A stretch of 32,000 nt of DNA from Zygophlyctis sp. KS116 (GCA_054661495.1 BAAFSQ010000096.1:2192-34191); one strand, 5' to 3'; shown: positions 1,585 to 32,000, numbered from the stretch's first letter. Notes: generated by a model not told the origin, from the sequence alone. Made by a program: numbers and translations.

Positions 1585-3966
1585 CTAAAAGAGTAATTCA
1601 TTGTACTTTGGATACGTCCAGAATTTATCGGCAGTCTTGGCTTCCACTGCATCTGCGACAGTTCTGACTTCATCAAAGAGAGGAATCAACTCTTCATTCA
1701 CAGCCAAAGCTTGAGCATCTCCTTCCATAGCATTGAGTTTGTCAATCAAAATGACTAGCTTTTCGGTTGATGATTTCAAACCAGACGTATGCGTAGATAA
1801 TTCATCAAAGGTAGCCTTTTCTGGACTTTTGCTAATGTCCATTCCGCAAGACTTCATAGAGGCGAGAGAATCAGCCAAAACCTTGCGATAAGAATAAGCA
1901 TCAGGTAGAAGAGTTTGGAAAATCATATTCTTCAATGTATTGCCTTCAATCAATAAATCCTTGGAATACTTTTCCATAACAATATGGAATCTAGATTCAA
2001 TTTCAACCTTTGATACAATTCCTAGAGAGCTTAAAAGCGTGGTGCTAGATGGCAAAAGTAACTAATCATTAATTTACCAAGTATTTCGTACCTGCTGGAA
2101 TGCTACTGGGCATGAACGGATATTGGGAAGTCCACGTCGAACAGCTTCTTTTTGCCATTCTTCAGAGTAGTTATTTCCTTCAAATCTGATGTTTTTGGAG
2201 GTTTTAATAAACTTCTTGACAATCGAGATCACATCTTCCTGAGAAGGAACTGCCTTTGATCCCATAACCTTGGCTAATTCAGCAGTTATTTTACCAAGGG
2301 AGTCAGCAACGGCCGCATTAACCAAAGTTACTGGGAATGATGGCGATTGCTTAGATCCTACAGCTCTAAACTCAAACTTGTTTCCTGTAAAAGCAAAAGG
2401 AGAAGTTCGATTACGATCGGTCAAATCTCGATTGATAGGTGGCAAAGAAGACACTTTGATATCTAAACGAGAACCACCGAGCTTGACAGTTTCCAAATGA
2501 GGTTTGCCCATTTCACTTACTACGCGAGATTCTTCAATTGAGTTCAAGACTTCAGTGAGATGCTCCCCTAAGAAGACAGACATGATACCTGGAGGGGCTT
2601 CGTTTGCACCCAAACGATGTTCATTTGAAGAGCTAGCAATTGAAGCGCGAAGTAATCCCCCGTGATTATGTACTGCGTCTAAAACAGCAACTAAAACCAA
2701 TAAGAAGCGGTGATTAGTTTCAGGACTTGCTGTAGGCTCCAATAAATTATCCCCCAAATCGGTTGACATTGACCAATTACAATGTTTTCCAGATCCATTA
2801 ACACCTTTGAATGGCTTTTCATGAAACAAGACCTGAAATATCAAAAATGAAAAACTACCTTGAGTTTATGACGGTGAGCCACTTGGTGTAAAGTATCCAT
2901 GACCAACAAATTATGGTCAACCGCGACAACAGCTTCTTCGAAAATTGGCGCCATCTCAAATTGATTTGGAGCAACTTCATTATGACGGGTCTTTACTGGC
3001 ACTCCTAATTTGTAAAGTTCCAACTCTGTTTCACAAATTGCAGCCAAAACTCTTGATGGAATTTGACCAAAATAATGATCTTCCAATTGTTGATGTTTTG
3101 GAGGAACTGTTCCAATCAAAGTTCTACCAGAAATCTTCAAATCCGGACGAAGATTATAAAGACCACGATCAATCAAGAAGAATTCTTGCTCTGTTCCCAA
3201 AGTAGAATAAACTCTTTTAGTAGTCTTATCTCCCAACAAATTCAAAAGCTTACAGGCAGCATTAGATAAAGCCTCTGAAGAACGCAAAAGAATAGTTTTT
3301 TCATCCAAAGCTTCCCCATTATAAGAAATAAAACAAGAAGGAATGTAAAGAATAGAAGTTCCATGAGGCCCACTTCTAATAAAAGGAGGACTATTCTCTA
3401 AGAAAATTTAAAATACCTTGTAGTATCCCAAATCGTATACCCTCTAGCTTCAAAAGTGGATCTAATCCCACCATTAGGAAAAGAAGAAGCATCTGGTTCT
3501 GCTTGCATTAACTGAGATCCTGAAAAACTATCAATAGCAGTAATCTTTTATAAAAGTTGTAAAAACTTACAACTTCCAAACCATTATTAATAGAAGTTTT
3601 CAAACTTAGGAATGAGTCATGCTTCTCAGCCGTTAGACCAGTCTGAGGTTGAAACCAATGAGTAAAGTGCGTAGCTCCTCTATCCATTGCCCAAATTCTA
3701 ATTGCATGAGCAACTGCATCTGCCGTTGGCTTATCCAATGGAGTTTTTCCCTAAATTCAGTTTAATAATTAAAGAAATACCGCCAACTGCGCAACAAATA
3801 GCGCATAAACCGATTTTGGCAGAGATCCAGCCAATACTTTCAAATCACAAACATTCTGACCAAATATTTCAGAAGGATAAGCATTTCTATTTCCAGTCTT
3901 TGGCCAATCCACTGATCGAGCGGGTCTCTCAATAACACTACTAGTCGCAGATATTCTTGCTTCCAT
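1585..3966 (-). CDS. Glutamine synthetase type III (GlnN-like)
   Basis: Motifs [62 protein letters not shown] and [22 protein letters not shown]. Introns at 3751-3780, 3545-3570, 3391-3416, 2833-2858 and 2062-2091. Confidence 0.95.
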
Positions 3967-4148
3967 TGTCAAAAGTTTTACGTGAGCGCGACTATAACGC
4001 GTTCGCGTCTTGGCCAGGGCGCCGCTGGTTGTGCTGATAAGAGTCTTCTCGGCTCATTTCTAAAGGCGATCATTCTAGATTCTAAATATAAATTCTATAT
4101 CCTAAATCTAGATAAAAATTCTGTCATCTTGGAAAACCATTTTCAAAT

Positions 4149-4605
4149 TTATTTCTTTTCATTTGCATGTTTCAAATGTTCAATCTTTTCCTGTTCCAAT
4201 TTTCTGAAATACTGTTCTTCAGCAGCAGCTTCTCTCTTCCCAAAAGTTCCCGATGCAGCAGACATTGGGGATAAACGAATTGTTTCATCTAAATTTTAAA
4301 AAAAAAGGAAATTACCAGCAACCGTCTTTGAATCACTCTGTACATGACCAGTTTCAGTCACAATTGGCGATGTAATTGCAATTTTAGATTTTGAAATTTT
4401 TTCCGCCAAATTTCTTTCTTTTTCTGCCAATTCTTGACGAAGTTTAGCAATAACTTCCTTTTCATGATCATGTATAAATTTCTCTTCTAAAGCAGACTCT
4501 CTTCCACCCTAGACTTTTAATACACTAAATTACCAATGGAGCTTTTGTACTGTACAGTCTCATTATCCGAGGTACATTAAATTTTTTAAGAGAATTACAA
4601 ATCAT
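4149..4605 (-). CDS. Mitochondrial ATPase inhibitor (IF1/Inh1)-like protein with two IF1-type motifs; absent from the ORF track
   Basis: Introns 4509-4533 and 4289-4315 give MICNSLKKFNVPRIMRLYSTKAPL/GGRESALEEKFIHDHEKEVIAKLRQEL...SGTFGKREAAAEEQYFRKLEQEKIEHLK. The N-terminus looks like a presequence. Confidence 0.8.
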
Positions 4606-4676
4606 CCTGCAAGCTTTCTACTAGAGTTTTCCTAGTCCACATGAACAGCCGTGGGTTATATTTCCCATTGTAGGCT

Positions 4677-5537
4677 ATGGTTATGGCTACGGGTAAAATG
4701 AAGACAATTCTACGTAAAGACTCTAAAGACTCTCAAGACTCTCAAAAATCTAAATCAGATCAAATAGAGCTAGTAGAAATAAATGAGGAAATTTCAAAAA
4801 TTGTAAATCAGATTAAATCTCTGGAAATAAAATTAAAAAAATTACAAAAGAAAAAATCAATCATGACTAGACAAGAATGTTTTTTGGAAAACATACCTTC
4901 GGACTTGATTTTAAATTTTTGTTCTTTTTTAGATCCTAGAGATATTTCAAGGTTTGCAACATGTCAAAAAAGTTTATGGAAGCTTATCAAACATGATTAT
5001 TTATGGAATCTATTGTTAAAGGATAGATTTAATATTGAGGCTCTGCCAGGGAAGGCCCTTGAATTGTATAAGGAAAATTATAGTAAAACTAATATACTCT
5101 ATGGGACAGATCTAAGAGTTACATGGTTGGATGAAACTCATTGGAAAAGAGTACAAAGATCGGTTGAATTGGTGTTTGTTTGGTGGTTTGAAGTTCGTGG
5201 CTCTTTTCTTGGGGTTAGGTCTGGGTCATATATACCAATATTACATGGAAGCTTTAGAGGAGAGAATCTTGAAAATATTCATATTTCTATACGATCAAAA
5301 GTTGAAGGTCAGGTAGGGGGTTTTTTATTTAATTACAAGTCTAGTATATCTGAATATATTTTTTCAGATTTGACAGATAAAAGTCAATCTGAAATTCATC
5401 TACCGCCAATTACAGTTGGGGATGACAAGGGATGTCCTGTTTTTCAGGATTTGGAATTAGAAATGCTGGATCTGGAAAGTGGATTGGTTAAACAAGGAAT
5501 CACTATAGAATATTTTGAATTAAAGAAAATAATCTAG
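4677..5537 (+). CDS. F-box protein with a PP2 (phloem protein 2)-like C-terminal domain
   Basis: F-box LENIPSDLILNFCSFLDPRDISRFATCQK...LW. PP2-like LRVTWLDETHW...VELVFVWWFEV. No intron needed. Confidence 0.75.
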   Translation: MVMATGKMKTILRKDSKDSQDSQKSKSDQIELVEINEEISKIVNQIKSLEIKLKKLQKKKSIMTRQECFLENIPSDLILNFCSFLDPRDISRFATCQKSLWKLIKHDYLWNLLLKDRFNIEALPGKALELYKENYSKTNILYGTDLRVTWLDETHWKRVQRSVELVFVWWFEVRGSFLGVRSGSYIPILHGSFRGENLENIHISIRSKVEGQVGGFLFNYKSSISEYIFSDLTDKSQSEIHLPPITVGDDKGCPVFQDLELEMLDLESGLVKQGITIEYFELKKII

Positions 5538-5543
5538 GAATTT

Positions 5544-6951
5544 TTAGTCTATTTTATTTTTTCTTTGGTGAGAAATCAAGTCTGCAATAGTAATGATTGA
5601 AATGTTCCATTTTCTTGCCCATGGGATTAAATCATTTCTACGTGCCATAGTTCCATTATCAAGGGTAATTTCAGAAATAACTGATACTGGTTGCTTTCCT
5701 GCAAGCTTACACAAATCTATTGATGCCTCTGTATGACCCATTCTAGATAAAACTCCTCCAGGATGGTAGCAAAGTGGAAATACGTGACCAGGGCGATTAA
5801 AATCTTGCGAAACACTAGTTGGGTTTGCTAAAGCATTGATTGTCATGCATCGATCAGAAGCTGAAATTCCAGTAGTTGTATTTATATGATCAACAGTTAT
5901 TGCATATGCTGTTTTTAAGGAATCAGTATTTTGTTTAACCATTTGAGGAAGGTTAAGAGTCTCAAGTCTTTCACCTAGCATTGGTACACACAATACACCA
6001 CTAGTAATTTAACAGAAACTAAAATACCTAGAATATCTAATCATGAATGCAGCTTTCTCAGGTGTAATATCTTGAGCTGCGATAACTAAATCACCTTCAT
6101 TTTCTCTATCTTGATTATCAACAACAATAACAAATTTCCCCATTTCTAGAATTAAATCATTATAATATACGTATTTCATGAATAGCCTTTTCAATACTAT
6201 CAAATTTCGCATCTATCCAGTTTGATATTTGAGGATAAAAAGGATCTTCAAATATTGTTCTTGGTAAATCTAAACTAGGCCCATATTTTGAAAAAATAAA
6301 ACTGCCCTTTTTCATTACTGCTTTGATAAATCTATCTTCATTTTCTAATAATAGCATTGGCAATAATACATCACTTAATTTTTCCATTCCCTTTATATTT
6401 TCAAGTTGAATAAAAATAAGATCAGCATTTTTATCAACTTGCATTGATCCAGAATCTACTGAATTTGATTCGAGTACTTTAACAAGTGAAGCCCTTAAAT
6501 CCATTCCTTTATCAACAAAATCCTGTATCCCCTGTTTTATAGAGATCCAAGGGTTAATCATGGCAAGACCATCATTGATACATTTAGAACTAGAAACTTG
6601 ATCATATAAAACTGATGCAAGATCCGGATAATCAGAATCTAAAACCTCTTTTTTCCAATATTGATAATCATTAATCAAAATATTTGTGGCACCTTTTTGC
6701 ACAGTTTTAAAAATCATTTCTAATCCAATTTCTTTTGGCTATCATTAATTCTTTCAAGAAATTACTAAATGCAATGACAAGTTTAGAGTATACACTATCC
6801 CAGGCAAAATAAGCCATTGAGAAAGATCCCAATATTGATCTACCTGCATAGGTGCCACAATTTCCCCATTACAAATATAAACATCCCTTCTTTCTATAAA
6901 GTCTGTCCCATCCCAAACCAATGCATTCTGACAACAAATAGACTCCTTCAT
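5544..6951 (-). CDS. RIB3: 3,4-dihydroxy-2-butanone 4-phosphate synthase fused to an N-terminal degenerate amidohydrolase-like region
   Basis: RibB motifs [33 protein letters not shown] and GHTEAS. Introns 6739-6765, 6146-6170 and 6001-6027 link four ORFs in frame. Confidence 0.8.
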
Positions 6952-7775: not shown

Positions 7776-7941
7776 TTAATTTTTTTGAATTTAACCTAGA
7801 CGTCGTGTCGCTAAAAGGTTTTTTTAATTTTTAAAAATTTCCGCCAGACAATTTTTAGACCTAGGATGAAAATACGCGTTTTCTCTTGTTTTTGTTTCTG
7901 GTTGTCAACTGTCAAAAAAAAAACTTTTGCAGTGGTAAAAA

Positions 7942-8451
7942 ATGGCTGCTCTCTCACAAATTCTTCTTGGTTTATTCATTGGAATTCTTACATTTCACGC
8001 TAGATTTGATTCTCTTTGGTACTCTTATTTTGGATCTGATCTAAATACTCTAAAATCTAGAGTCTCAACTTCTCAAAGAGCAGAAGCAACATCATTTTAT
8101 AAATCTATTCTAAATTCTCATCCATACTTTAATTATGTAATGGGAATTTCTGCTGGATTATTGTTATTATCAGCTCTAGGACAAGTCTTTCAGTATCCTA
8201 GAAAAAGAGTAGCTAATACTATAAATTTACTCTTATTACTCTCTTCTACGGCGATTAGATATCTAGCGTATAAACCAATTTCTAAAATTTTTAAAGCTAG
8301 ATATATTAAACCTGATGAAGAGGCAAAAGCATTATATTCTATTGCTCTTTGGAATTCTATTTCTCTCTCTTTATTGATTTGTTGTGCATTGATTCATGTA
8401 AGTGGAGAAGAAGAGGAAGATGTTGGTTTAAAGGAAAAAAAGTCTAGATAA
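7942..8451 (+). CDS. Shr3-like ER membrane chaperone of amino-acid permeases
   Basis: Four hydrophobic segments, a GILTFHARFDSLW...FYKSILNSHP pattern and a basic C-terminus (KEKKSR). Confidence 0.5.
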   Translation: MAALSQILLGLFIGILTFHARFDSLWYSYFGSDLNTLKSRVSTSQRAEATSFYKSILNSHPYFNYVMGISAGLLLLSALGQVFQYPRKRVANTINLLLLLSSTAIRYLAYKPISKIFKARYIKPDEEAKALYSIALWNSISLSLLICCALIHVSGEEEEDVGLKEKKSR

Positions 8452-8586
8452 ATTTTGAATTTTCTAAAGTATATTCCACATTCTCTATTTTTATACTACT
8501 CAGAATCTAATTATATCATAGATTTAGACTAGATGTTGGTTCCTAGACTGAAACCTGCCTGATATTCAAGTCAACTATAATAGTTC

Positions 8587-10050
8587 ATGGAAAAAGGAAA
8601 GGGGAAATTAGTACTTTTAGAAAACGAGGTTGAAGAGTCTGATCATGAATTTTCTTTGACGCAATCTGACTCTGAAGAAGAATCTCTAGACTCTTTGGAA
8701 AATTCAGAAGAGTCTTTTCAAGAGGAAGAAGAAGAAGAAAATGAATTGTTGGATTTACTACAAGAAGCTCAGGAATATGGGGATGGAGGAGATATGGTTG
8801 ATGGTTTAAGATCAGGAAAATATAGACAAAAATTATCAATAGATGAAACTCAAAGAGATAAATTAAGAGATAAATCACAATCTTCTTCTTCTGGAAAAAG
8901 ATCTGCACAAGAGTCTGTAGAAGATAAAGACTCTAAAATAAATAAATGTCCGTAATTTTGTCTGCTAAACGTAATGCTCATACTAGAGTTCGTTCAGCGT
9001 CTTCACCTCCAAAAGCATTGGTGGCTCCTGCTGCTGATGTGCCATTATTTCTAGAGTCTGTGGTAGATGAGAGTTGGTGTTTACAAGACAAGGATGGGTC
9101 AATGGAAACGTTTGTAAATGGGGTAGATACATTAAATGGTGTTTTTAAGCATGGGTTATTGGTTTGTTTGATTTTTAGTAATGACAGACTGAATTTAAGG
9201 CTGTAAGAAACCAGATTATTGCGCATCAACAATTGTTAAATTCAAAAAACGTTGCTGAATTAACACAAAAATTAGAACAATCTCAAAAGGAATCTAGTAT
9301 ATTTCATCAAGAATTGGATATTGTCAGACAGCAAGTTGAAAAGAATAATTCTATTTTAGCATCTAGCTGGATATTTATTGATAAAAAGGTATAACTTTGA
9401 AATATTTAAAAAATTAGAAAGCAAAGACTGATTGTGCTTTATTTTTTGCTCTATGGAAATCAAGGTCTGTATCAGCTACAAAAGAGAAATTAATTCATCA
9501 TATGGCACTTTTACACAATCATGCAAATATAATGAGAAAAGTTATGAATGGTTGGAGAGGTGTTATTGGATCTACATGGAAGTCCAATTTTGAGCATAAA
9601 GTCAAGGTAATTTGAACTATTAAACTTAGAGAGAAGCAGAACTTTGTATACAAGAGATGTCTCAAAAGTATGAAGATCAGATCTCAAAGGTATATTTAGT
9701 TTTTTAATATTTAGCTGAATCAACAATTAAACGAAGCTAATTCAAGGTTGAAAGACGCTGAATCACATAGGGATTTGAAGGAAGCAGAAATGAAAAGGGC
9801 ATTAATGCGAGGTGTATGTGCCCTTAATATGGAAGCAATGTCTGTTTTTAGAGACAAGACCATCTTAGCAGATCCAATGAAATCCGCAAAAGTAAATCAA
9901 GTTCTTGAAACTGCTTCTGATTCATTGTTCCAAGCCGCTATAATTCCTCAACACAGTGGTTCTTCTCAAAAAACTGTTCAGTTTGCTGAAAATTCAGAAT
10001 GCAAACAAGAATCTAAAATAAATAGAATCCTTGTCACCAGACATCAGTGA
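8587..10050 (+). CDS. POC5: Centriolar protein POC5
   Basis: C-terminal MKRALMRGVCALNMEAMSVF signature, acidic N-terminus and coiled coils. About five short introns, e.g. 8952-8986 and 9152-9177 region (GTTTGT...GACAG, approx. 9162-9187). Confidence 0.85.
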
Positions 10051-12767: not shown

Positions 12768-13411
12768 ATGTCTACTGATCTTGAAACTAGATTGAAATAT
12801 GCCTTATACTGTTCTATCGGATTGCAGGTTGCAGCATTGGTAAAAGATATATTCTCATAATGCAGGTTACTAGTGCAATAACTGCTGTCAATTCTTTTAA
12901 AGATCCAGAGGATGGTTTTAAAGATTTAAAAGGATGCTTTCTCTATGTAGAGGTGGATGTTAAAAACAATTTCTTTATTCCAACGAATACATCCAGTGTT
13001 GGCTGCTCAGCTATTAAAACGTACATTTTAAAAAGTCTAATATTTTATAGAATTTCTTCAATTGAAGCTGTATCATCCCTTATAGTACTCTGTATTTTAA
13101 CATGGATTGCATTCACCAATATTAAGAGATCGGCACCTATTTTTTGGATCTTGTTGGGATTTGGCGTCGTGTGTAGCTGCATTGGGTTTTTAGGATCTTG
13201 TTTGTACTCTGTTGGTCTTCAAAAGACTAAAGAAAATCTTCATGGAAATTTTGATCAATTGATAGGTAGTGTGGTTGGTGGGCATTCAACGCCTATATCG
13301 AATGGTGAAAAGACTAGTTGGTTAGCATGTCTATGCTGGATTGTATTTTCAGCATTAGAATTTATTTCTTACAAGTGGGATCAGACAAGTAATAAAACTG
13401 CTGGACTTTAG
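12768..13411 (+). CDS. Four-TM protein, TMEM179/MARVEL-like, paralog 1
   Basis: LQVAAL / intron / ...GCFLY...VGCSAI / intron 13021-13050 / ...SCLYSVGL...SWLACLCW. Confidence 0.75.
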
Positions 13412-13524
13412 TAAAGCGATAAGGTCGATGCTCTTGAGTTTCGGACCGCTTTTCTTTCAGTAACGCCGCTTTTCCTAGAGCACAACTCAAAATCTAAATT
13501 TAGATTTACTATTTTGAATTTAAA

Positions 13525-14198
13525 ATGTCTCTCTCAAATTTACAACCACCATTAAGGTCAACTCTGATATATTTTTCAATTGTATTACAGATTGTTGCAT
13601 TTGTAAGATATCTTTATAAAATAGTAGATTTCTAGTATTATTACTGCTTCTATTTCTGCTAAAGATCTTAAATTTGATTATATGTATTTAAGAGCTTGCT
13701 TTCTTTATATGCAAGGAGTTGTTAAAGAAATAGATGATCCAAAAAAAGTTGGTAGTAAAATATCTGTTTGGACTCCAGAAAATTCCTCTAGTGCTAGTTG
13801 TTCAGCTATTCAAGCGTAAGATTATATTACTGGAATTAATGTATAGGATTTCTGGGATTGATGCATTGGGATCTGCTATAGTAATTATCACTCTAATATG
13901 GCTTACATTTTTTGGTCTTGAGAGATCTAAAACTGTTTTTGGGATTTTAATTGGATCGGGTGTATTTTGTGGATTTATAGGATTTGTAGCTGCATGTATG
14001 TACTCTGTTGGACTTAAGAATACAAGAGATAATTCGGGTGGTTTTTTCGATCTTGTACTATCAGCTGCAGGAGCTGCTAATAGTGTTACTATTGAGATTG
14101 GTCGGACATCTAGCTGGATTGCATTCATGAGTTGGATAATCTATGTTGCAGTTGAATTTATTGGTTATAGATATTATGAAATAAGACTACTTGATTAG
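13525..14198 (+). CDS. Four-TM protein, paralog 2
   Basis: LQIVAF/...ACFLY...ASCSAI/...ACMYSVGL...SWIAFMSW, with the same two intron positions as paralog 1. Confidence 0.75.
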
Positions 14199-14254
14199 TA
14201 AGCAAGTGTGCCGCACCTTGATTGAGTTTCTATTTTTAGTATTCAAAATTATAA

Positions 14255-15207
14255 ATGAATCGTCAAACATCAGCTTCCAAATTGCACAAATTAAAAAGGC
14301 AATCATCAGTAGGAATCATGTCCATAAGTTCCCCAGTGTCTGCTGGGCCTGTGATTACTCCCAGAAGTACTTCAGTGTCATCCAATCTCTTCAATAATGG
14401 AAGAAATACAATTGTCTTGGCCAGTAAACATCCTACAGTAACAAAATCTACATCAGAACTTGCTTCATCTAATTCTTTCCAAAAGGATAGAACAGGTCAA
14501 GATTCCCCAACAAATAATAAATGGCCGTCTTCAAGGAAATCTTTAAAAGATTCAAAGACTGATTCTTCAATTCTGTTGAATCGCTTAAAATCTATAAACA
14601 AGGAATTACTATGCTCAATGATTGCTCTATCTCTGCAAATTATACTTTTTGTAAGTTTTAAAATGCTCAACTCTAGATCACATCTGTTTTAGTATCAATC
14701 GTCACATTTAAACATCTGAAATACCCGGATCCATCAACTGTTTTTGCTTGCGTATTATATATTTCAGAAAAGGTTGACAGTTCGTCTTGTTTTTCAATTG
14801 AAACGTAAGATTAAAACTTTTTAATTTGAAGCATATTCTTCATTAGTACATTATCAACAATGCTGATGTTTCTAATTTTATCAGCAATCATATTGCGAAA
14901 ATTGAAGAGAACTCGGACATCTTATGTAATCGGAATTTCAGTTGGACTTTTTTGTAGTTTTCTAACTTTTGCAGCAGCATGCTTATATGAAGTTGGATTA
15001 AGAACAACAATTGATCATAATGGTGGGAAGGAACATTTTGCTAAAATTTATTCTGATAGAATTGATATTCATCTAATATATATGGCTAAAAATGCTGCAT
15101 GGATGACTGCGATAATATGGCTAATTTATGCAGGAGTAGAATTTTATGAAGGATTATCATTTATGTCTGATTCAGAGTATGAAGTTTTTATGATTGATCA
15201 AGATTAA
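14255..15207 (+). CDS. Four-TM protein, paralog 3, with a ~115-aa Ser-rich N-terminal extension
   Basis: LQIILF/...ACVLY...SSCFSI/...ACLYEVGL...AWMTAIIW, with the same intron positions. Confidence 0.72.
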
Positions 15208-15234
15208 AAATCGGAGTCGATTTTGATTTGCAAA

Positions 15235-16033
15235 ATGTTTACTGGTACTTCAACATCGCCTGTTTTTACTAGAAAGAAAAAGAGAAATAGCACATTATTG
15301 ACGCTAATATTTTTAGTCTTATGTTTTGATTTACTTTTACGGTCATTTACTTTTACTTCTCCAAATTCGGACTTGGGTGAAGCCGACGTGCCACATTTAC
15401 AGAGTCTACATTTTAAGGAATTTTACAATAAGAAGCCAATCTTTATGATTGGGGATGAAGCTGCATTGAATTCTTTTTCATTTGAAAATGCTGGATATTC
15501 ACTACAATTAAATCAACTCATATTTCCTCATAATGAATTATTAAATCGTGCTGGAATTGGTTTTAATAGTACAGTTTGGGCTATTGAATCATTTGAATTC
15601 TTAAAAAGTATTAAAAATGCCGGTCTGATTATAATTAATATCGGAACAGAGTAATTCAAATTATTAATCATAAAGGGAAGCATTAAATGGAGGAAATTTA
15701 ACTAATTTTGCAAAATCACTATCAAGTCTGATATATTTACTTCGACAATCATTACCAGATGTTTCACTTGCTGTCTTTACTCCAATGCCTCCTATCAATA
15801 TTTCAGATTTAGACCGACTGCAGTTTGTTAGGACAGATGTTGAAGTTTTCGGCCAGAATTTTATGGTTCCAGTCTTTGACTTGTGGCAAGTTTTTGATTT
15901 AGATCCAGCAAGCTATAAATCAATGTCTGCATTTCTAAATAATCCTCAATCATTTAACGCAAATGCCAATGCATTAATAGCTGCTAAATTATTTGAATTC
16001 CTTTCGAAAAACTTTGTGCAGTTTGTTGAATAG
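15235..16033 (+). CDS. Membrane-anchored SGNH/Iah1-like protein, probably catalytically inactive
   Basis: N-terminal TM segment. MIGDE in place of GDS, LNRAGIGFNS, IGTEEA in place of GxND, and no DxxH. One intron at about 15651-15675. Confidence 0.7.
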
Positions 16034-16054
16034 AAATCTTGATACGCGCAAAGA

Positions 16055-17030
16055 ATGAGCGAATCGTCAGCACAAGATAGTTTCGAAAGACAAGTCTTAT
16101 TTGCAGATATTGAGAGTCCAAACGAGTCCAAATTATCCCAATATGTTAAAAAGATTTTGCCCAAACATCGGTATTCACAAAGCCAAAGTAATTCTTACAT
16201 TTGGGGAACAGTCGCTGCAATAATTATCGGACTACTAATAGGAGACTTGATAATTCGAATATTTCCATGGAATCATATAGGACTAGACTCTGATGACTAT
16301 AATAATGCACCAATAATATTATTAGGAGATTCAATCACTCAATATGGATATTCTACTGAAAGAGAAGGATGGACATCACTAATGTCATGCTCTTATGCAT
16401 TAAGATATGATGTATTGAATAGGTTTATAGTAATATATTAAATACTCAGAGGTCATTGGGGGTTCAACACTGATGCTTATGTGAATAGAATTCAAAAAAC
16501 GATGAAAAATGCTTTAGGAACTTGGGATACTCCAACTTTAGTGACCTTAATGATTGGTACAAAGTAATAATTTATTAGCTAATAGATATAGTGATGCAGA
16601 ACCATCATCAAGGAAAACTATGCATGTTCCTATTGAACGATACAAGGAAAATTTGAAATCTATAATTTCTGATATTTTGGAATTTAAGACTCAAAGACTA
16701 ATTCTGATTACACCTCCTCCGACTCGTAAATCTAGACAACCAGAAAATCGTTACGAATACCGTACAGCAATGATTGAAATGGCTAAAGATTTTGATTTAC
16801 TAGTTTTGGACACATGGTCAGTATTTTTATTAAATTATACAATTGGAGAAATGTCATGGGATGCATTAGATTCAGTCACCATGAAGCATTATAATGACTC
16901 TATAATGGAAAATTATCTAATTGACGAGGAACATTATAATATCCAAGGTAATCGTCAGCATTGGTATGCATTGTCCAATATGATTAAAATCTTCTATCCA
17001 GAAATATGGCCGTGGGACGGCTGTATTTAG
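16055..17030 (+). CDS. Membrane-anchored SGNH hydrolase, Iah1-like esterase
   Basis: LLGDSITQ, LNRGHWGFNT, IGTNDA (after a 28-nt intron) and DEEH; TM segment near the N-terminus. Confidence 0.88.
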
Positions 17031-17105
17031 AACAAGATTTCTAGTATAGTTAGTGGCGGTTAAGTAAATTTTAAAAGAATATGAATACTGATTTGACGTT
17101 GGAGA
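16930..17105 (+). repeat. Left copy of the ~176-bp direct repeat bracketing the island (right copy 20748-20924)
   Basis: Contains the esterase 3' end, the intergenic spacer and the first ~8 codons (MNTDLTLE) of the gene at 20900. Roughly a dozen differences between copies. Confidence 0.95.
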
Positions 17106-17146
17106 TTATTTTAAAAATCCTTTAGATGTAGACTTTGTAATTCGTT

Positions 17147-17652
17147 ATAACAATAGAAATCATCCGAGACTAACTGTTGACATAGGTGAACAACGGATTT
17201 CAGCTATTCCCGAATTCGTTGTGCACCAATGTGATAGCGTAACAGAGTCTGTATGCGTTGTTGCCGTGGTATTTACACCTAGTATATCTAATTCTTAGGA
17301 TAAGCATATAAAAAACGTGTCGGGTTCTAGTAGCTTTGGAGAATCGCAGATTTCAATGGAAATTCTTTCCGCAGCTTATGGAAATTTTCTGGAAGATATT
17401 GATACAGGAAATGAAAGAAATCAGACCATTTATGCCATAAGAGTCATTTCAAACTACGTCACGTTTTATTGCGCAACTGTTCCTATTGATTATTTGAAGG
17501 CACTAGCATTCGGTATCCCCAAGACAGAAACGTTTGAAATAATCCGTTATCCCGGCAGGAATGGAAAGAAGACGGGACTTGACCTCGTTGATGTCGAACA
17601 AAGAAATGCTGCTCTTCGTGGTATGACTATCCTTGGACTTGCACTCGCTTAA
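17147..17652 (+). pseudogene. 5'-truncated copy of the PD-(D/E)XK-like nuclease gene at 19366-20341
   Basis: Aligns to 19830-20341. It starts inside intron 2, retains intron 3, and VVE/DK is changed to VAV/DK. Confidence 0.85.
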
Positions 17653-17738
17653 TTACTTTTAATAAGTTCAATATATTGAAAATATCCCTGCAGACTTAGA
17701 TTATCTTAACTAAAAGATATTGTCATTTGTGACTCATC

Positions 17739-17899
17739 CTTCTTGAGTGAGTATTTACAGTCATTCCGCGCTTTGAAGGTGCAGTGAATTTTATGAATTC
17801 GATTACAATCACATACGTGGTGCCACTATGGAGAATGTTTTAGCAGCAAAGAATTTCTTCTTGAGTGAGTATTTACAGTCATTCCGCGCTTTGAAGGTG
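17739..17899 (+). repeat. 43-bp perfect direct repeat (17739-17781, 17857-17899) enclosing a copy of 18321-18393
   Basis: CTTCTTGAGTGAGTATTTACAGTCATTCCGCGCTTTGAAGGTG occurs twice; the insert matches the downstream CDS at 72/73 nt. Confidence 0.95.
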
Positions 17900-17946
17900 T
17901 ATGTATGACTTGTTCAGTTTCCCGACCGCTTGCATCAACTAAAAAT

Positions 17947-18756
17947 ATGTCGCAAACGCTCTGGATTGCATATGATAATCCTGCCAAGTTATTTAGTCCT
18001 GCAAGAGTCTCCATTGAAGGATGCTCTGATGTGGCTGCCTTTAAAGGTACTATTGGCAATTTTAACTTAAAAGTTGCAATGAGAAACAGACCTTTACTTG
18101 CCATCCCTCAAAATACTCCCATCACTCTCTACAAATCTGATGGAACTACTGAAATTGATGTCGGGGACTCTCCTGCTGCTTATTTGGATGGAAACTCAAG
18201 TAAGATTCCACTCATTGTCAAGGTTACTGCTGTAGGGGAATCCGGTCGTCAAGCTTCGACTAGAAAAATGGCCGTTGATGCTTCTTGTCGAAAATACTTG
18301 GATGCTATTGCTAGAAAAATCAGTGAATTTTATGAATTCGATTATAATCACATACGTGGTGCCACTATGGAGAATGTTTTAGCAGCAAAGAATGGAAAAC
18401 AAGGTAAAGACTGGAGATTTCGACTGGCAATAAAGAATTCTACTCAAATTGATGATAAAGGCATTGAAAGAGTAGTTAAAAAAGGCAAGCCATTTACTAA
18501 TTGCCCCCTCCTGAAGTTGTTCCAGCCTGATGAATGGGAAAAAATCAGAATGTTTAATAGCATCACATCCCAAAGTATTCATCCTGCAGGGCTTCCTCGT
18601 TTATCTGATGGAAGGGCATATATTATCATCCCTGTTTCCATGTATTCTGATGAAGCTGTTGCATTTCTCAAAGACATTGGTGTCCGAAGCTTTCTCTTAT
18701 CTGACCCTGGTGCTCTAGTAGTCAAGAATGAAGATACCGTGTTTGAAAGTTCTTAG
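17947..18756 (+). CDS. Crinkler (CRN)-like protein: ubiquitin-like header plus an unrecognised C-terminal domain
   Basis: MSQTLWIAYDNP...VSIEGCSDVAAFK...ITLYKSDGTTEI...GNSSKIPLIVKV resembles CR-Ubl headers. Probable in-frame 27-nt intron at about 18047-18073. Confidence 0.65.
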   Translation: MSQTLWIAYDNPAKLFSPARVSIEGCSDVAAFKGTIGNFNLKVAMRNRPLLAIPQNTPITLYKSDGTTEIDVGDSPAAYLDGNSSKIPLIVKVTAVGESGRQASTRKMAVDASCRKYLDAIARKISEFYEFDYNHIRGATMENVLAAKNGKQGKDWRFRLAIKNSTQIDDKGIERVVKKGKPFTNCPLLKLFQPDEWEKIRMFNSITSQSIHPAGLPRLSDGRAYIIIPVSMYSDEAVAFLKDIGVRSFLLSDPGALVVKNEDTVFESS

Positions 18757-18869
18757 GGACTGACTCACAAGTTGCTAAATTTATTTGTGCAAGCATTGAT
18801 TGGATTTTTTGTTGCAGTAGTAACAGTCATTCCACGCTTTGAAGTGTATGTATTTTTTATTGCAGTAAA

Positions 18870-19011
18870 GTAGAATACACATATTTCTTTATGAATCCAT
18901 CACTTTTGATTTTAGATTTTATCATGATTCAATGATAACCTTGTTGTCAGTTGTCTGAATCAGTTGAATCTGCTCCTTTTATTGTATGTTTTGGTTGTTG
19001 CGACACCTGCT
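18870..19011 (+). repeat. ~142-bp repeat, second copy at 20350-20494
   Basis: GTAGAATACACATATTTCTTTATGAATCC...GACA(T)CCTGCT is present at both sites with few differences. Confidence 0.95.
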
Positions 19012-19148
19012 AGTGGCGGTTAAGTAAATTTTAAAAGCATATGAATACTGATTTGACATTGGAGATTATTTTAAAAATCCTCAAGATATATACTTTGTAA
19101 ATGTGGCTCGTCTTCACTCAAGTCCGAATTGGGAGAAGTAAAAGTAAA
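19011..19148. repeat. Chimeric repeat: copy of 17051-17140 running into an inverted fragment of CDS 15346-15440
   Basis: The reverse complement of 19058-19148 reads TTTACTTTTACTTCTCCCAATTCGGACTTGAGTGAAG...CCACATTTACAAAGT, matching 15346 onward. Confidence 0.88.
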
Positions 19149-19365
19149 CCAAGTGCACGTACTATGTATAGAGCACCTGATGATTCTATATATTTTAAAT
19201 GGAATTCTCTGATAAAATCATTCTAATCAATGCATCACTAGTAATGAATCCACTAAAGTTTAAGTACATTTTTGACAGTGGCGCCGCTCATCAAAACCTG
19301 TAAAAAATACTGCAATTTCTTTTTTGGAGTTTATAAACTACTATATTTAGTAACATTTCGTCTTA

Positions 19366-20341
19366 ATGACTTCAAAAACTTCTACTAGAAAACGAACAAG
19401 AACTGAATCCGAAACTGAACCTTCGTCTGAAAGAGATTTGCCAACCAGTGCATCTTCTTTTTTACTCAAACATACTCTAGCACTTGGAATCAAATTCACA
19501 CCTGCCAATGATCTCTATGATGTTATTCCCAACGTTCCAATTGACGGTAAAATTATTATTATTTCTTAATAGTTAGAGTCTTCGGTGCCTTTCCTCTTGC
19601 CTCAGTTGAGTTTTGATACATTGACTGCTACAAGGAGAAATCTTCGGAACAACTCAAGTCTTTCCGGAACCGATAAGAATTTTATCAAGAAATTAAGTGA
19701 TGTTGCTACAAATAGCACTGAGAATATTGGCACTGAAGAAAGTAAAACAGACTCACTTGTTGATGACATGTTACGATCAGTGGGATTGAACAACTGGCCA
19801 TTATCGATAGAGTATTTTCATCATTCATAATAACAATAGAAATCATCCGAGACTAACTGTTGACATCGGGGAACAACGGATTTCAGCTATTCCCGAATTC
19901 GTCGTGCGCCAGTGTGATAGCGTTACAGAGTGTGTATGCATTGTTGTTGAGGTATTGTCACCAAGTATATCCTCTAATCTTTAGGATAAGCGTATAAAAA
20001 ACGTATCCCGTCCTAGTGGGTTTGGAGAATCACAGATTTCAATGGAAATTCTTTCCGCAGCTTATGGAAATTTTAATGGCGTTAATGGTATCAAAGAAGA
20101 CCAAACAATCTACGCCATTAGAGTTATTTCAAATTATGTCACATTTTATCGCGCAACTGTTACAGTGGATTATTTGAATGAATTAGACCTTGGTATCCCC
20201 AAAAAATCTACTTTGGAAATAAGACGCTTTCCCGGAATAAATGAAAAAGATTCTGGTCTTGACCTCGTCGATGTGGGACAAAGAAAGGCTGCTCTTCGCG
20301 GTATGACAATCCTTGGACTTGCACTTTCTCAATTACTATAA
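19366..20341 (+). CDS. Restriction-endonuclease-fold (PD-(D/E)XK-like) protein with a basic NLS-like N-terminus
   Basis: Three introns (30, 28 and 33 nt) give EESKTDSLVDDML...AIPEFVV...IVVEDKR...GESQISMEILSAAYGN...IYAIRVISNYVTFY. RKRTR lies near the start. Confidence 0.7.
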
Positions 20342-20747
20342 TAAGGATTGTAGAATACACATATTTCTTTATGAATCCGTCACTTTTCATTTTAGATTTT
20401 ATCATGATTCAATGATAACCTTGTTGTCAGTTGTCTGAATCAGTTGCATTTGCTCCCTTTATTGTATGTGTTTTGGTTGTTGTGACATCCTGCTCTTCAA
20501 TGAATTCATTCTTTAAATGAACAAGGCTACAAAGTGGCCACCTCTTAATCAATAACCCTGAAGATGATAGCTTTGAGCTAAAAACTTTTGTCCGGGAGTC
20601 ATCTTCCGTGTAAGCGCTATCTTTGTATGCTGGCTGGAAATTTGAATTTGATTACAGTGATGTTTTGTTCACCAATGGAAAAGAGCAGATTGATTATGTC
20701 TACAAACTCGTGCTCTGTAAGTGATCCATTGCCCCAACAAACGTTGA

Positions 20748-20924
20748 AACATTATAATATCCAAGGTATTCGTCGGCATTGGTATGCATTGTCCAATATG
20801 ATTAAAATCTTTCATTCAGAAATATGGCCGTGGGACGGCTGTATTTAGAACAAGATTTCTATTTTTAGTCAGTGGCGTTCAAGTAAATTTTAAAAGAATA
20901 TGAATACTGATTTGACGTTGGAGA
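20748..20924 (+). repeat. Right copy of the ~176-bp direct repeat; supplies the start of the gene at 20900
   Basis: Matches 16930-17105. Confidence 0.95.
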
Positions 20925-21992
20925 GGCTACCGGCAACCGCCAGAAGACCAACAAATGGTTTAAGTGTTAATAACAATTCCATTCTTTCTAGACTTATTCC
21001 AAAGGACAAATGGTACAAATTTACTATTTTCTGGTCTCTAACTCAGCTCTTATTCATTGGGATCCTGGAAGGGGTGGTGATGAAAATCCATTATGATTAC
21101 ATATACAATGATCTTAGTAACTATTCACAATCTCCATCGGAGGGAGAAGTTTTATTGCGAACTGTACCCAATGCAAAAGCATTGATTGTGTATCAAGCAC
21201 TGTTTATTTGTGCTCAGGCTTTTCAGTTTTTCTTATGTATTGATGCTATATACTCTCTTTCAATGATCCAACTAGTAGCTACTGCAATTTTTAATTGGGC
21301 TTTATTTGCTTATTCAATTATGCAGTATCAGCAAGCAGCAAATGTGATTACTGAAAATATAGCAGAGATCAATCCAAAAATTCATCCAACAAAACAAATG
21401 GAGATAATTGTGATTGTTCTCATGTCAGTTTTTTCCACTGTTTGGGCTTACCTGGCTTATAAATTGTATAATTTATTTGGATGGAAGTTGTACAAGGAAA
21501 TGGGGGCAGATATGTCTCTAATGAAGAGTCTAAGGCTTTATCATATTTACACAATGCTTCTAAAATTGGATGTATTCTTCTTTTTCGGTTTCGATATTCA
21601 ATTTTTGGTCTTGGTTTTAATACAACGGCCAGGTGGAGGTGTTGGAATGGCTCTGACTATAGTTCATGCAGCTCTAGTAGTTCCGCTTACTCCTGCTCTG
21701 TTGGCAGTAGCATATTTTGCAGTCAGGAAAGAGAGAAGAAGTTTCACAATTGTCACTCTGCTTGGATTTTTTGGAGGAATTATATTTCTGATTTACATGA
21801 TGGTTGATGCGAGAAGTAATACGGAAAAATATCTAAATTCAAAGAATTCCATTACTTTTTTCAGTAATTTTAAATTTTTATTCTAACTTTTTAGTAAGTC
21901 TTACACTCATCATGTGTACAATGACCATCATTTCACTCATTATGAATTATCGTAGATTTGGTAAAGGATTGAAGCAGAAACTTCACCATTAA
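20900..21992 (+). CDS. UPF0658-family multi-pass fungal membrane protein
   Basis: DAIYSLSMIQL, FGWKLYKEMGAD, LLKLDVFFFFGF and terminal FGKGLK. One intron at about 21864-21894. Confidence 0.8.
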
Positions 21993-26215: not shown

Positions 26216-28327
<2,112 letters not shown>

Positions 28328-28571
28328 ATAGTATATCTCATAAAATTTGAATAGTCGAATAGGCACTGCAATATATTATCACTTTGAGTCTGAATCTTTT
28401 GGAGCATCATTTACAATATTAATCGAATCACATCCTTTGATTAACTTTGAGCACCTCTGCCCGATCATTGCAAATAGTAGTTCTGGAGTGATTACCCATC
28501 TTAAAGACTCCAACTGTCCGAACGCGAAACGCACACGACTTCGCGAACTCGACGCGCTTTCAAAACTGATA

Positions 28572-31913: not shown

Positions 31914-32000
31914 TTTGCATTCACCACCACAAAAGTCTGCATTTGAACTAAAGTCTCCCCTTCGTGAGACACAGTCTGAATTCTGCCTTGAAATCCAAAC
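31914..32000 (+). repeat. Exact copy of kinase CDS 27811-27897, running off the window edge
   Basis: TTTGCATTCACCACCACAAAAG...GAAATCCAAAC is identical over 87 nt. Confidence 0.95.

Follow-up and report, generated by a model that had tools for sequence, protein, structure and literature searches.

A 32,000-bp stretch of the genome of Zygophlyctis sp. KS116 (hereafter, the window) contains an island of 3,642 bp between the genes for an SGNH/GDSL esterase and a multi-pass membrane protein. The evidence supports the view that these two genes were formerly adjacent and that the block was inserted together with a long duplication of its target, so that both genes were kept whole. The island is a nested mosaic of at least three events of different ages rather than one cassette. 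It was probably produced by repeated break repair that captured copies of multi-copy gene families, among them a Crinkler-like gene and genes of a predicted restriction-fold nuclease family.

Duplicated flanks and empty sites in relatives

Self-comparison of the window yields a direct repeat, 16930-17105 vs. 20748-20924 (93.8% identity over 177 columns, E 2e-72), whose two copies delimit the island. The flanks and the adjoining host genes are as follows.

16055-17030, plus strand: host SGNH/GDSL esterase gene, open reading frame (ORF) pieces 16055-16441 and 16554-17030; intact, final 33 codons within the left flank copy
16930-17105, plus strand: left 176-bp flank copy; esterase part with ancestral residues, start-codon part with derived changes
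20748-20924, plus strand: right 176-bp flank copy; esterase fragment decaying, with four derived amino-acid changes; start-codon part is the working one
20900-21886, plus strand: host multi-pass membrane-protein gene ("UPF0658" in the first-pass annotation of the window); intact 328-codon ORF with chytrid orthologs

Each copy consists of the terminal 33 codons and the stop codon of the esterase, a 50-bp spacer, and the opening eight codons of the downstream gene. On the left, the esterase part of the copy continues the esterase body, and on the right, the start-codon part continues into the membrane-protein ORF; hence, both host genes are whole. The first-pass annotation had described the same ~176 bp on both sides with the host genes intact, considered these genes to be former neighbours, and proposed a search for empty sites; on all these points it is borne out.

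Empty sites, with one copy per junction and no island, were found in two relatives. In a metagenome contig (L022), the sole relative locus from one metagenome scan, the esterase stop codon is separated by ~75 bp from the start codon of the membrane gene, whose product is 61% identical to that of the window. The better relative (L051, an 8,963-bp contig from a public run), obtained by exact-protein look-ups, has 87 bp from esterase B to the membrane gene and contains nothing similar to the island genes. Its eight-gene synteny with the window includes an ORF, a membrane-protein paralog, esterase A, esterase B, the membrane protein, and an opposite-strand PP2C gene. Since neither relative has the island between the two genes, the window block is an insertion.

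The membrane-protein gene of L051 is present in two tandem copies (3068-5331, 60% identical), while the window has one. The membrane-protein tree does not place the window gene relative to this duplication, and no remnant of a lost membrane-gene copy was found in the island. The tandem duplication in L051 does not affect the conclusions on the young 176-bp pair.

Nested structure of the island

Three units, each comprising an insert and its duplicated flanks, are stacked in the island. The inserts are 19066-20747, 17141-19010, and a templated piece of 73 bp; the corresponding duplications measure 176, 90, and 43 bp, with 93.8, 93.3, and 100% identity between the flanks, respectively. The following parts, including the external source of one of them, were distinguished.

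15346-15431, plus strand: segment within the upstream esterase paralog (ORF 15223-15654), source of the inverted copy at 19066-19148 (85%)
17051-17140, plus strand: inner duplication, copy 1; a 55-bp start-codon piece and the opening 35 bp (17106-17140) of the older cargo
17140-17666, plus strand: truncated nuclease paralog; begins inside the equivalent of intron 2, with exon-3 and exon-4 equivalents at 17158-17268 and 17299-17652
17739-17899, plus strand: 43-bp unit; perfect pair 17739-17781 / 17857-17899 enclosing a 73-bp copy (99%) of 18321-18393
17905-18756, plus strand: Crinkler-like gene; 283-aa ORF, header at residues ~14-113, C-terminal domain at 114-283
18870-19011, plus strand: tail copy 1; 142 bp, 93.8% identical to 20350-20494
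19011-19148, plus strand: inner duplication, copy 2, and inverted copy; 19011-19100 is 93.3% identical to 17051-17140 and continues as inverted 15346-15431
19159-19265, plus strand: upstream element with a TATA-like box; 76-83% identical to a stretch 5' of at least four Crinkler-like genes elsewhere
19366-20341, plus strand: full nuclease-family gene; exons 19366-19546, 19577-19811, 19840-19951, 19985-20341
20350-20494, plus strand: tail copy 2; immediately 3' of the stop codon of the nuclease gene
20571-20732, minus strand: pseudogene fragment of a ~279-aa family; 5'-truncated, with stop codons; right end of the cargo

The 90-bp duplication encloses the truncated nuclease paralog and the Crinkler-like gene, and includes a third copy of the 55-bp start-codon piece at 19011-19065. 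The inverted copy of the upstream segment forms the left end of the older cargo. Templates of other pieces lie downstream: the 73-bp insert is a copy of the coding sequence of the Crinkler-like gene itself (template 540 bp away), and tail copy 1 has its template 1.5 kb away. The Crinkler-like gene is, in addition, flanked by a ~40-bp pair (17868-17906 / 18816-18853, 90%). Zero to two nucleotides are shared at the junctions, and the ends of the cargo are truncated genes, one beginning within an intron and the other being an antisense 5'-truncated pseudogene. The family of the latter has four to five other genomic copies (e.g., L040:1344-2183) and no Pfam, NCBIfam or PDB sequence match above threshold. 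With at least three nested events, varied flanks, and pieces of truncated genes at the ends, the single discrete cassette envisaged in the first-pass annotation has to be abandoned.

Order and relative ages of the events

Compared with two outgroups, the outer (working) esterase end retains ancestral residues, and all four derived replacements are found in the inner fragment. The two left start-codon pieces have three common derived changes relative to both the working copy and the outgroups; therefore, the left flank served as the source of the inner pair at some time after the outer duplication (event 1). Judging from these substitutions, the outer flanks decay reciprocally.

The 43-bp/73-bp unit is the youngest event and is still polymorphic between populations, as metagenome run X3 skips the 43-bp unit (joint 17777 to 17897). 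A second small length polymorphism inside the island is at 18820-18872, where ~50 bp between two short direct repeats 3' of the Crinkler-like gene are missing from runs X2 and X3.

The two nuclease copies differ with synonymous divergence (dS) of 0.27 in exon 3 and 0.64 in exon 4, the ratio of nonsynonymous to synonymous divergence (dN/dS) being ~0.24, and their common introns differ by ~15%. It follows that both were long-working genes before one of them was cut; by these estimates, the nuclease copies are older than all nested duplications. The assembly contains two copies of the nuclease family only, both of them in the island, and thus the cargo donors are either unassembled or lost.

A family of predicted restriction-fold nucleases

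The full nuclease-family gene has introns of 30, 28, and 33 nt and encodes ~294 codons. Its exons were translated and searched singly, with exon 4 alone used in the homolog search. At E up to 0.001, this search yielded representatives of 150 clusters, the full-length ones being ~270-330 aa long. The named ones belong to Glomeromycotina, namely, Rhizophagus, Gigaspora, Diversispora, Ambispora, Paraglomus, Acaulospora, and Entrophospora. Neither the exons nor the homologs have a Pfam, NCBIfam or PDB sequence match above threshold.

Four features are conserved in the family, namely, a glutamate within a helix, strands with PE(F) and E-D-K, and a helix with GE.Q, and the window gene has them all: PEF is encoded by exon 3, the terminal VVE of exon 3 continues into the initial DK of exon 4, and the helix that follows contains GESQ. 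These residues supply the acidic residue of strand 2, the (D/E)-x-K of strand 3, and the helix glutamate of the PD-(D/E)xK type. The fold was modelled on a natural full-length homolog (P0045; 42-sequence alignment, pLDDT 88), 43% identical to the window gene over exon 4. According to VIA-align, this model is most similar to the mitoribosomal proteins mS30/mL65 (Z 13.3) and mL37 (Z 13.0) over ~210 residues, followed by the nuclease domains of DrdV (Z 8.2) and BpuSI (Z 7.5), and by many restriction endonucleases (REases), NucC, McrC, Hjc, and Can2 at Z 4-6; Foldseek agrees, more weakly. The family is thus predicted to have the restriction-endonuclease fold (alpha-beta-beta-beta-alpha-beta core) with catalytic-type residues and may be regarded as a predicted nuclease. 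The presence of one full and one truncated PD-(D/E)XK-like gene, as well as the fold of the former, had been anticipated in the first-pass annotation, which would have been undermined by a non-REase fold.

The truncated copy lacks exons 1-2 and the start codon, and V replaces the acidic residue of its E-x-K. The possibility that this copy forms a chimeric gene with the start codon at 17081 was considered and rejected, since a stop codon is reached with every splice choice tried.

The N-terminus of the full-length protein is K/R-rich and resembles a nuclear signal, while several fungal members of the family (among P0044-P0059) begin with a mitochondrial-leader-like sequence. The gene calls flanking four of the Glomeromycotina homologs include no separate Crinkler neighbour; in a fused gene model (P0076), the nuclease part is followed by a weak Crinkler match.

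The Crinkler-like gene and the shared promoter

The Crinkler-like ORF has 41 homologs, the named ones coming from an aphelid and a chytrid. Based on the alignment with them, the gene probably starts at methionine codon 14 (17944) and contains an in-frame 27-nt intron at 18047-18073. Residues ~10-125 match at least 28 genomic places, the C-terminal part matches three, and paralogs fuse the same header to REase-like C-terminal domains, that is, one conserved header is combined with diverse C-terminal modules. The protein itself has no Pfam match at E up to 1 and no NCBIfam or PDB match above threshold. The ubiquitin-like Crinkler header PF20147 is matched by four out of 20 homologs, all below threshold (best E 0.0014), and the nearest named Atlas clusters carry PF20147 with scores of 0.88. 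Neither LxLFLAK nor HVLVxxP is seen in the translation or in the family consensus; these motifs are missing from many non-oomycete Crinkler members as well (PMC5289972). The gene appears to have a Crinkler-type header and architecture, weakly supported by Pfam: the CRN-like character assigned to it in the first-pass annotation is borne out by the domain arrangement and, more tentatively, by the header.

The model of this protein is of low confidence in the header and of good quality over residues 114-283. No usable match was obtained with it from Foldseek against PDB or from the Atlas shape search; VIA-align with the C-terminal domain (18244-18753) gave weak HEPN rows at Z 3.8-4.7 (Cas13, HEPN toxins, Swt1, Csm6), and a HEPN-like fold is suggested as a lead only.

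The upstream element shared by several Crinkler-like genes elsewhere precedes the nuclease gene in the island, and the Crinkler-like gene of the window lacks it. The presence of a Crinkler-type element in front of an unrelated nuclease gene points to recombination among these loci.

Recurrence elsewhere in the genome

Recurrence was assessed in a sample of ~150 kb of the genome, taken without control regions. At one locus (C234; L031 = G000:C234:6000-15539), a 414-bp direct pair (478-891 / 8312-8725, 98.3%) surrounds 7.4 kb and duplicates the 3' end of a RING-type gene, both neighbours being whole. The cargo consists of a Crinkler-REase gene, a gene for a 722-aa P-loop protein, an RNase III-like gene, and a GIY-YIG-like ORF. 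The Crinkler-REase gene with its promoter element adjoins one flank; next to the other is a piece of a ~279-aa family member, whose relative orientation matches that in the window island but which is cut at a different codon. At another locus (C198, L029), the segment 5203-5473 is repeated 3' of a Crinkler-REase gene as two pieces 1 kb apart, 6700-6863 and 7894-8005 (83-89%), which looks like an older case of the same kind of duplication-insertion. Measured flank lengths are 43, 90, and 176 bp at the window island and 414 bp at C234. The first-pass annotation had proposed to test whether other loci of the two cargo genes have long flanking duplications of their own; in the sample, this is the case for the Crinkler-REase gene of C234 and probably for that of C198, and the nuclease family has no copy outside the island in the assembly.

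Genomic setting and assembly support

The window corresponds to positions 2192-34191 of contig C96 in an assembly of 12.7 Mb in 1,175 contigs. It has GC content of ~33% and is eukaryotic, with very short introns (27-33 nt in the window genes), and the stretch is present in freshwater metagenomes. The best named relatives of the host membrane protein come from the chytrids Spizellomyces, Borealophlyctis, Phlyctochytrium, and Rhizophlyctis. Intron sizes, metagenome presence, and these relatives agree with the genome of a lake chytrid.

Upstream of the island, tandem paralogs make up the host neighbourhood (12860-17030): two SGNH esterase genes (15223-16033, 16055-17030) are preceded by three ORFs for small membrane proteins (12860, 13734, 14860), in an order kept in L051. 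The PP2C gene 3' of the membrane-protein gene, on the minus strand, also matches the arrangement in that relative. An Rfam search of 15000-21500 gave no match. At the other end of the window, a perfect 87-bp repeat (27811-27897 / 31914-32000) has its second copy at the contig end (C96 stops at window position 32000), and contig C119 begins with 77 bp identical to 28317-28393; both look like assembly-graph overlaps.

An artefact, in which a short-read assembler joined two haplotypes or paralogous regions in series, could be suspected, given that the assembly is fragmented, that the contig terminates in the 87-bp repeat, and that the unitig rows seen do not span 16987-17359, the left junctions at 17105 and 17140 being taken from the assembly itself. 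Nevertheless, the repeats are 6-7% divergent and hence resolvable, and unitigs of the source run match at 100% the segments 18937-19859 (tail copy 1, start-codon piece, upstream element, exons 1-2), 20417-20805 (tail copy 2, ~279-aa family fragment, right flank), and 17359-17768 (truncated nuclease copy into the 43-bp unit). Moreover, two independent freshwater metagenomes contain the same junction between the tail and the start-codon piece and most island parts with 0-5% differences. An artefact is accordingly highly improbable.

The island is present in all three runs that cover it. No contigs skipping it were seen in four runs; Logan contigs lose rare variants, and this does not show fixation. 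Runs X2 and X3 have no contig at 90% likeness over the esterase body (16300-16842); the left neighbour may differ in these populations, but such gaps prove nothing.

Origin of the island

The structure described above probably arose through repeated repair, by staggered-break fill-in or template switching, in which copies of multi-copy families were captured; in this compact genome, only those insertions would have survived that rebuilt both neighbours. A break with long single-stranded ends would occur at an intergenic site, either from two opposite-strand nicks 40-180 bp apart or from a collapsed fork switching templates; both sides would be filled in, duplicating the interval bounded by the nicks, and a copy of DNA from another place would be joined between the two duplicates. 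The oldest event would have placed 19066-20747 between the esterase and membrane-protein genes with duplication of 176 bp, the cargo comprising the inverted local copy, the Crinkler-type promoter, the nuclease gene, the tail, and part of a member of a third family. Event 2 would have placed 17141-19010 within the left end of event 1, duplicating 90 bp and bringing in the truncated older nuclease paralog, the Crinkler-like gene, and the tail copy. Event 3, still polymorphic, would have duplicated 43 bp around the 73-bp copy of neighbouring coding sequence. The cargo genes would then be passengers from multi-copy families. With spacers of 50-90 bp, an insertion would be lost unless its flank rebuilt the end of one gene and the start of the other, and because of such losses the survivors would be enriched for long flanks.

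Repair or template switching fits the direct duplication of the target on both sides (single-copy in relatives), the use of both nearby and distant templates for the inserts, the minimal homology at the junctions, and the position of insert ends anywhere in a gene. Since the same signature, with 43-bp flanks, surrounds a 73-bp non-coding templated insert, a cargo-encoded enzyme is not needed.

Several points weigh against this explanation. The repair pathway and the survival filter are inferred from sequence, and the age estimates rest on few substitutions. In every recurrent case seen, the cargo includes Crinkler-type genes; passive capture would not lead one to expect this, unless it is due to selection or ascertainment. 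The window island and C234 have common end features, the Crinkler-type promoter and the ~279-aa family fragment; passive capture does not account for these either, and they could indicate a common element. The cargo donors are absent from the 12.7-Mb assembly. Finally, the tail and 90-bp pairs are younger than the nuclease paralogs, and thus event 2 needs several templates or a later replacement.

Some of these observations would be explained by a selfish nuclease-driven cassette, as proposed in the first-pass annotation. In one form of it, the cargo PD-(D/E)xK protein, or a Crinkler-REase acting in trans, would make staggered cuts at intergenic targets and the cassette would be copied into the break, leaving very long target-site duplications. 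The full nuclease gene does have catalytic-type residues, evolves under constraint, and encodes the nuclear-signal-like N-terminus; Crinkler-type cargo is found at the window locus, C234, and C198, with the same end features in the same orientation at the former two; and Crinkler-like selfish elements have been reported in fish (PMC12957317). On the other hand, a cassette-encoded nuclease would hardly account for the bracketed 73-bp non-coding insert, for flanks varying from 43 to 414 bp, or for ends cut at different points of the same gene family, with no fixed termini. In addition, the nuclease family has just the two island copies in the assembly, its Glomeromycotina relatives lack a Crinkler neighbour, and the island occurs in all three covering runs with no empty-site joint seen. 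Signs of known mobile elements are also lacking, in agreement with the first-pass annotation, which had seen no transposase, reverse transcriptase, terminal inverted repeats or long terminal repeats. No island ORF has a Pfam domain of a transposase, integrase, reverse transcriptase, or rolling-circle/tyrosine recombinase. The self-comparison revealed no terminal inverted repeats, long terminal repeats or conserved termini at the island ends, the sole inverted pairs involving 15346-15431 outside the island. A short target-site duplication of constant length is likewise missing, and neither Helitron ends (5' TC, 3' CTRR, A|T target) nor a poly(A) end can be recognised by eye at either junction. 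Such a cassette is therefore unlikely, and the putative nuclease-driven mobility is less likely than host break repair. A more general version, in which Crinkler-class genes and allied restriction-fold nucleases constitute a new eukaryotic mobile gene that makes widely staggered intergenic nicks, is copied into the break, and leaves long target duplications, seems to us rather implausible; if true, it would explain the Crinkler cargo at every such site seen in the genome, and the long target duplications would keep tightly packed neighbours alive.

A two-step origin may also be considered, that is, a tandem duplication from the esterase 3' end through the membrane gene, followed by ectopic replacement of the first gene copy that left 176 bp. 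The locus can duplicate, as the two tandem membrane-gene copies of L051 demonstrate, and the tree does not settle orthology of the window gene to either of them. Still, the island retains no membrane-gene remnant beyond codon 8 and no esterase remnant, there is no esterase fragment 5' of the second L051 copy, and C234, C198, and the 43-bp and 90-bp pairs would each require a matching duplication and a precise replacement, so that we give this scenario little credence.

Under the preferred explanation, break repair with capture of passenger genes, the island shows that genes can enter between neighbours 50-90 bp apart without breaking either. It also offers three events dated at one site, the youngest of which still varies between lakes. 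If the pattern is genome-wide, it would suggest concretely how Crinkler-type families have expanded in chytrids and would serve as a natural record of staggered-break repair in an early-diverging fungus.

Comparison with known systems

The top structural matches of the nuclease-family model are mL37 and mL65, mitoribosomal proteins that have been termed repurposed endonucleases (PMC8998825). The similarity is limited to the fold: sequence membership of the PDCD9 type in Pfam is not observed, there is no sequence-level match in Pfam or PDB, and the window family keeps the catalytic-type acidic and lysine residues. The window copy lacks a mitochondrial-type leader, which some Glomeromycotina members possess. 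With Type II/IIG/IIL restriction enzymes (DrdV, BpuSI) and other PD-(D/E)xK nucleases, the family shares the core fold and the placement of the acidic and lysine residues, but it is a stand-alone eukaryotic protein with an extra ~100-aa N-terminal region and without a partner methylase or ATPase. This defines a eukaryotic restriction-fold family whose closest structural relatives are animal mitoribosomal mL37/mL65, and bears on the origin of the latter.

Similarly to the Crinkler (CRN/CR) families of oomycetes, chytrids, and Glomeromycotina, the Crinkler-like protein combines a ~100-aa N-terminal header with varied C-terminal modules, the arrangement that defines Crinkler architecture (PMC5289972), and belongs to a large patchy family, here with REase-like domains in paralogs. 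It differs in scoring below the Pfam threshold, in lacking both motifs, and in having a C-terminal domain without a clear match; besides, the host is a free-living or algal-associated lake chytrid and no known plant or animal pathogen. The teleost Crinkler-like selfish element AACRNL likewise is a Crinkler-derived gene multiplying in the genome of a free-living host, but it is reported to spread via flanking hAT transposons (PMC12957317), whereas here no transposon flanks the island and the flanks are host duplications.

The features of the insertion itself are best compared with repair. Templated inserts and junctions with little or no homology are characteristic of template-switch repair by microhomology-mediated break-induced replication or fork stalling and template switching (MMBIR/FoSTeS). 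Breaks with protruding ends, produced by paired opposite-strand nicks, lead via end joining to tandem duplications with or without inserts (PMC5730883); as in our case, the stretch between the cuts is directly duplicated, inserts are often templated nearby, and little homology is seen at the junctions. The flanks described here (43-414 bp) are longer than the 46-nt overhangs tested in that study. Compared with both known types of repair, the inserts are large (1.7-1.9 kb), carry whole genes, and recur at one site and at other Crinkler loci.

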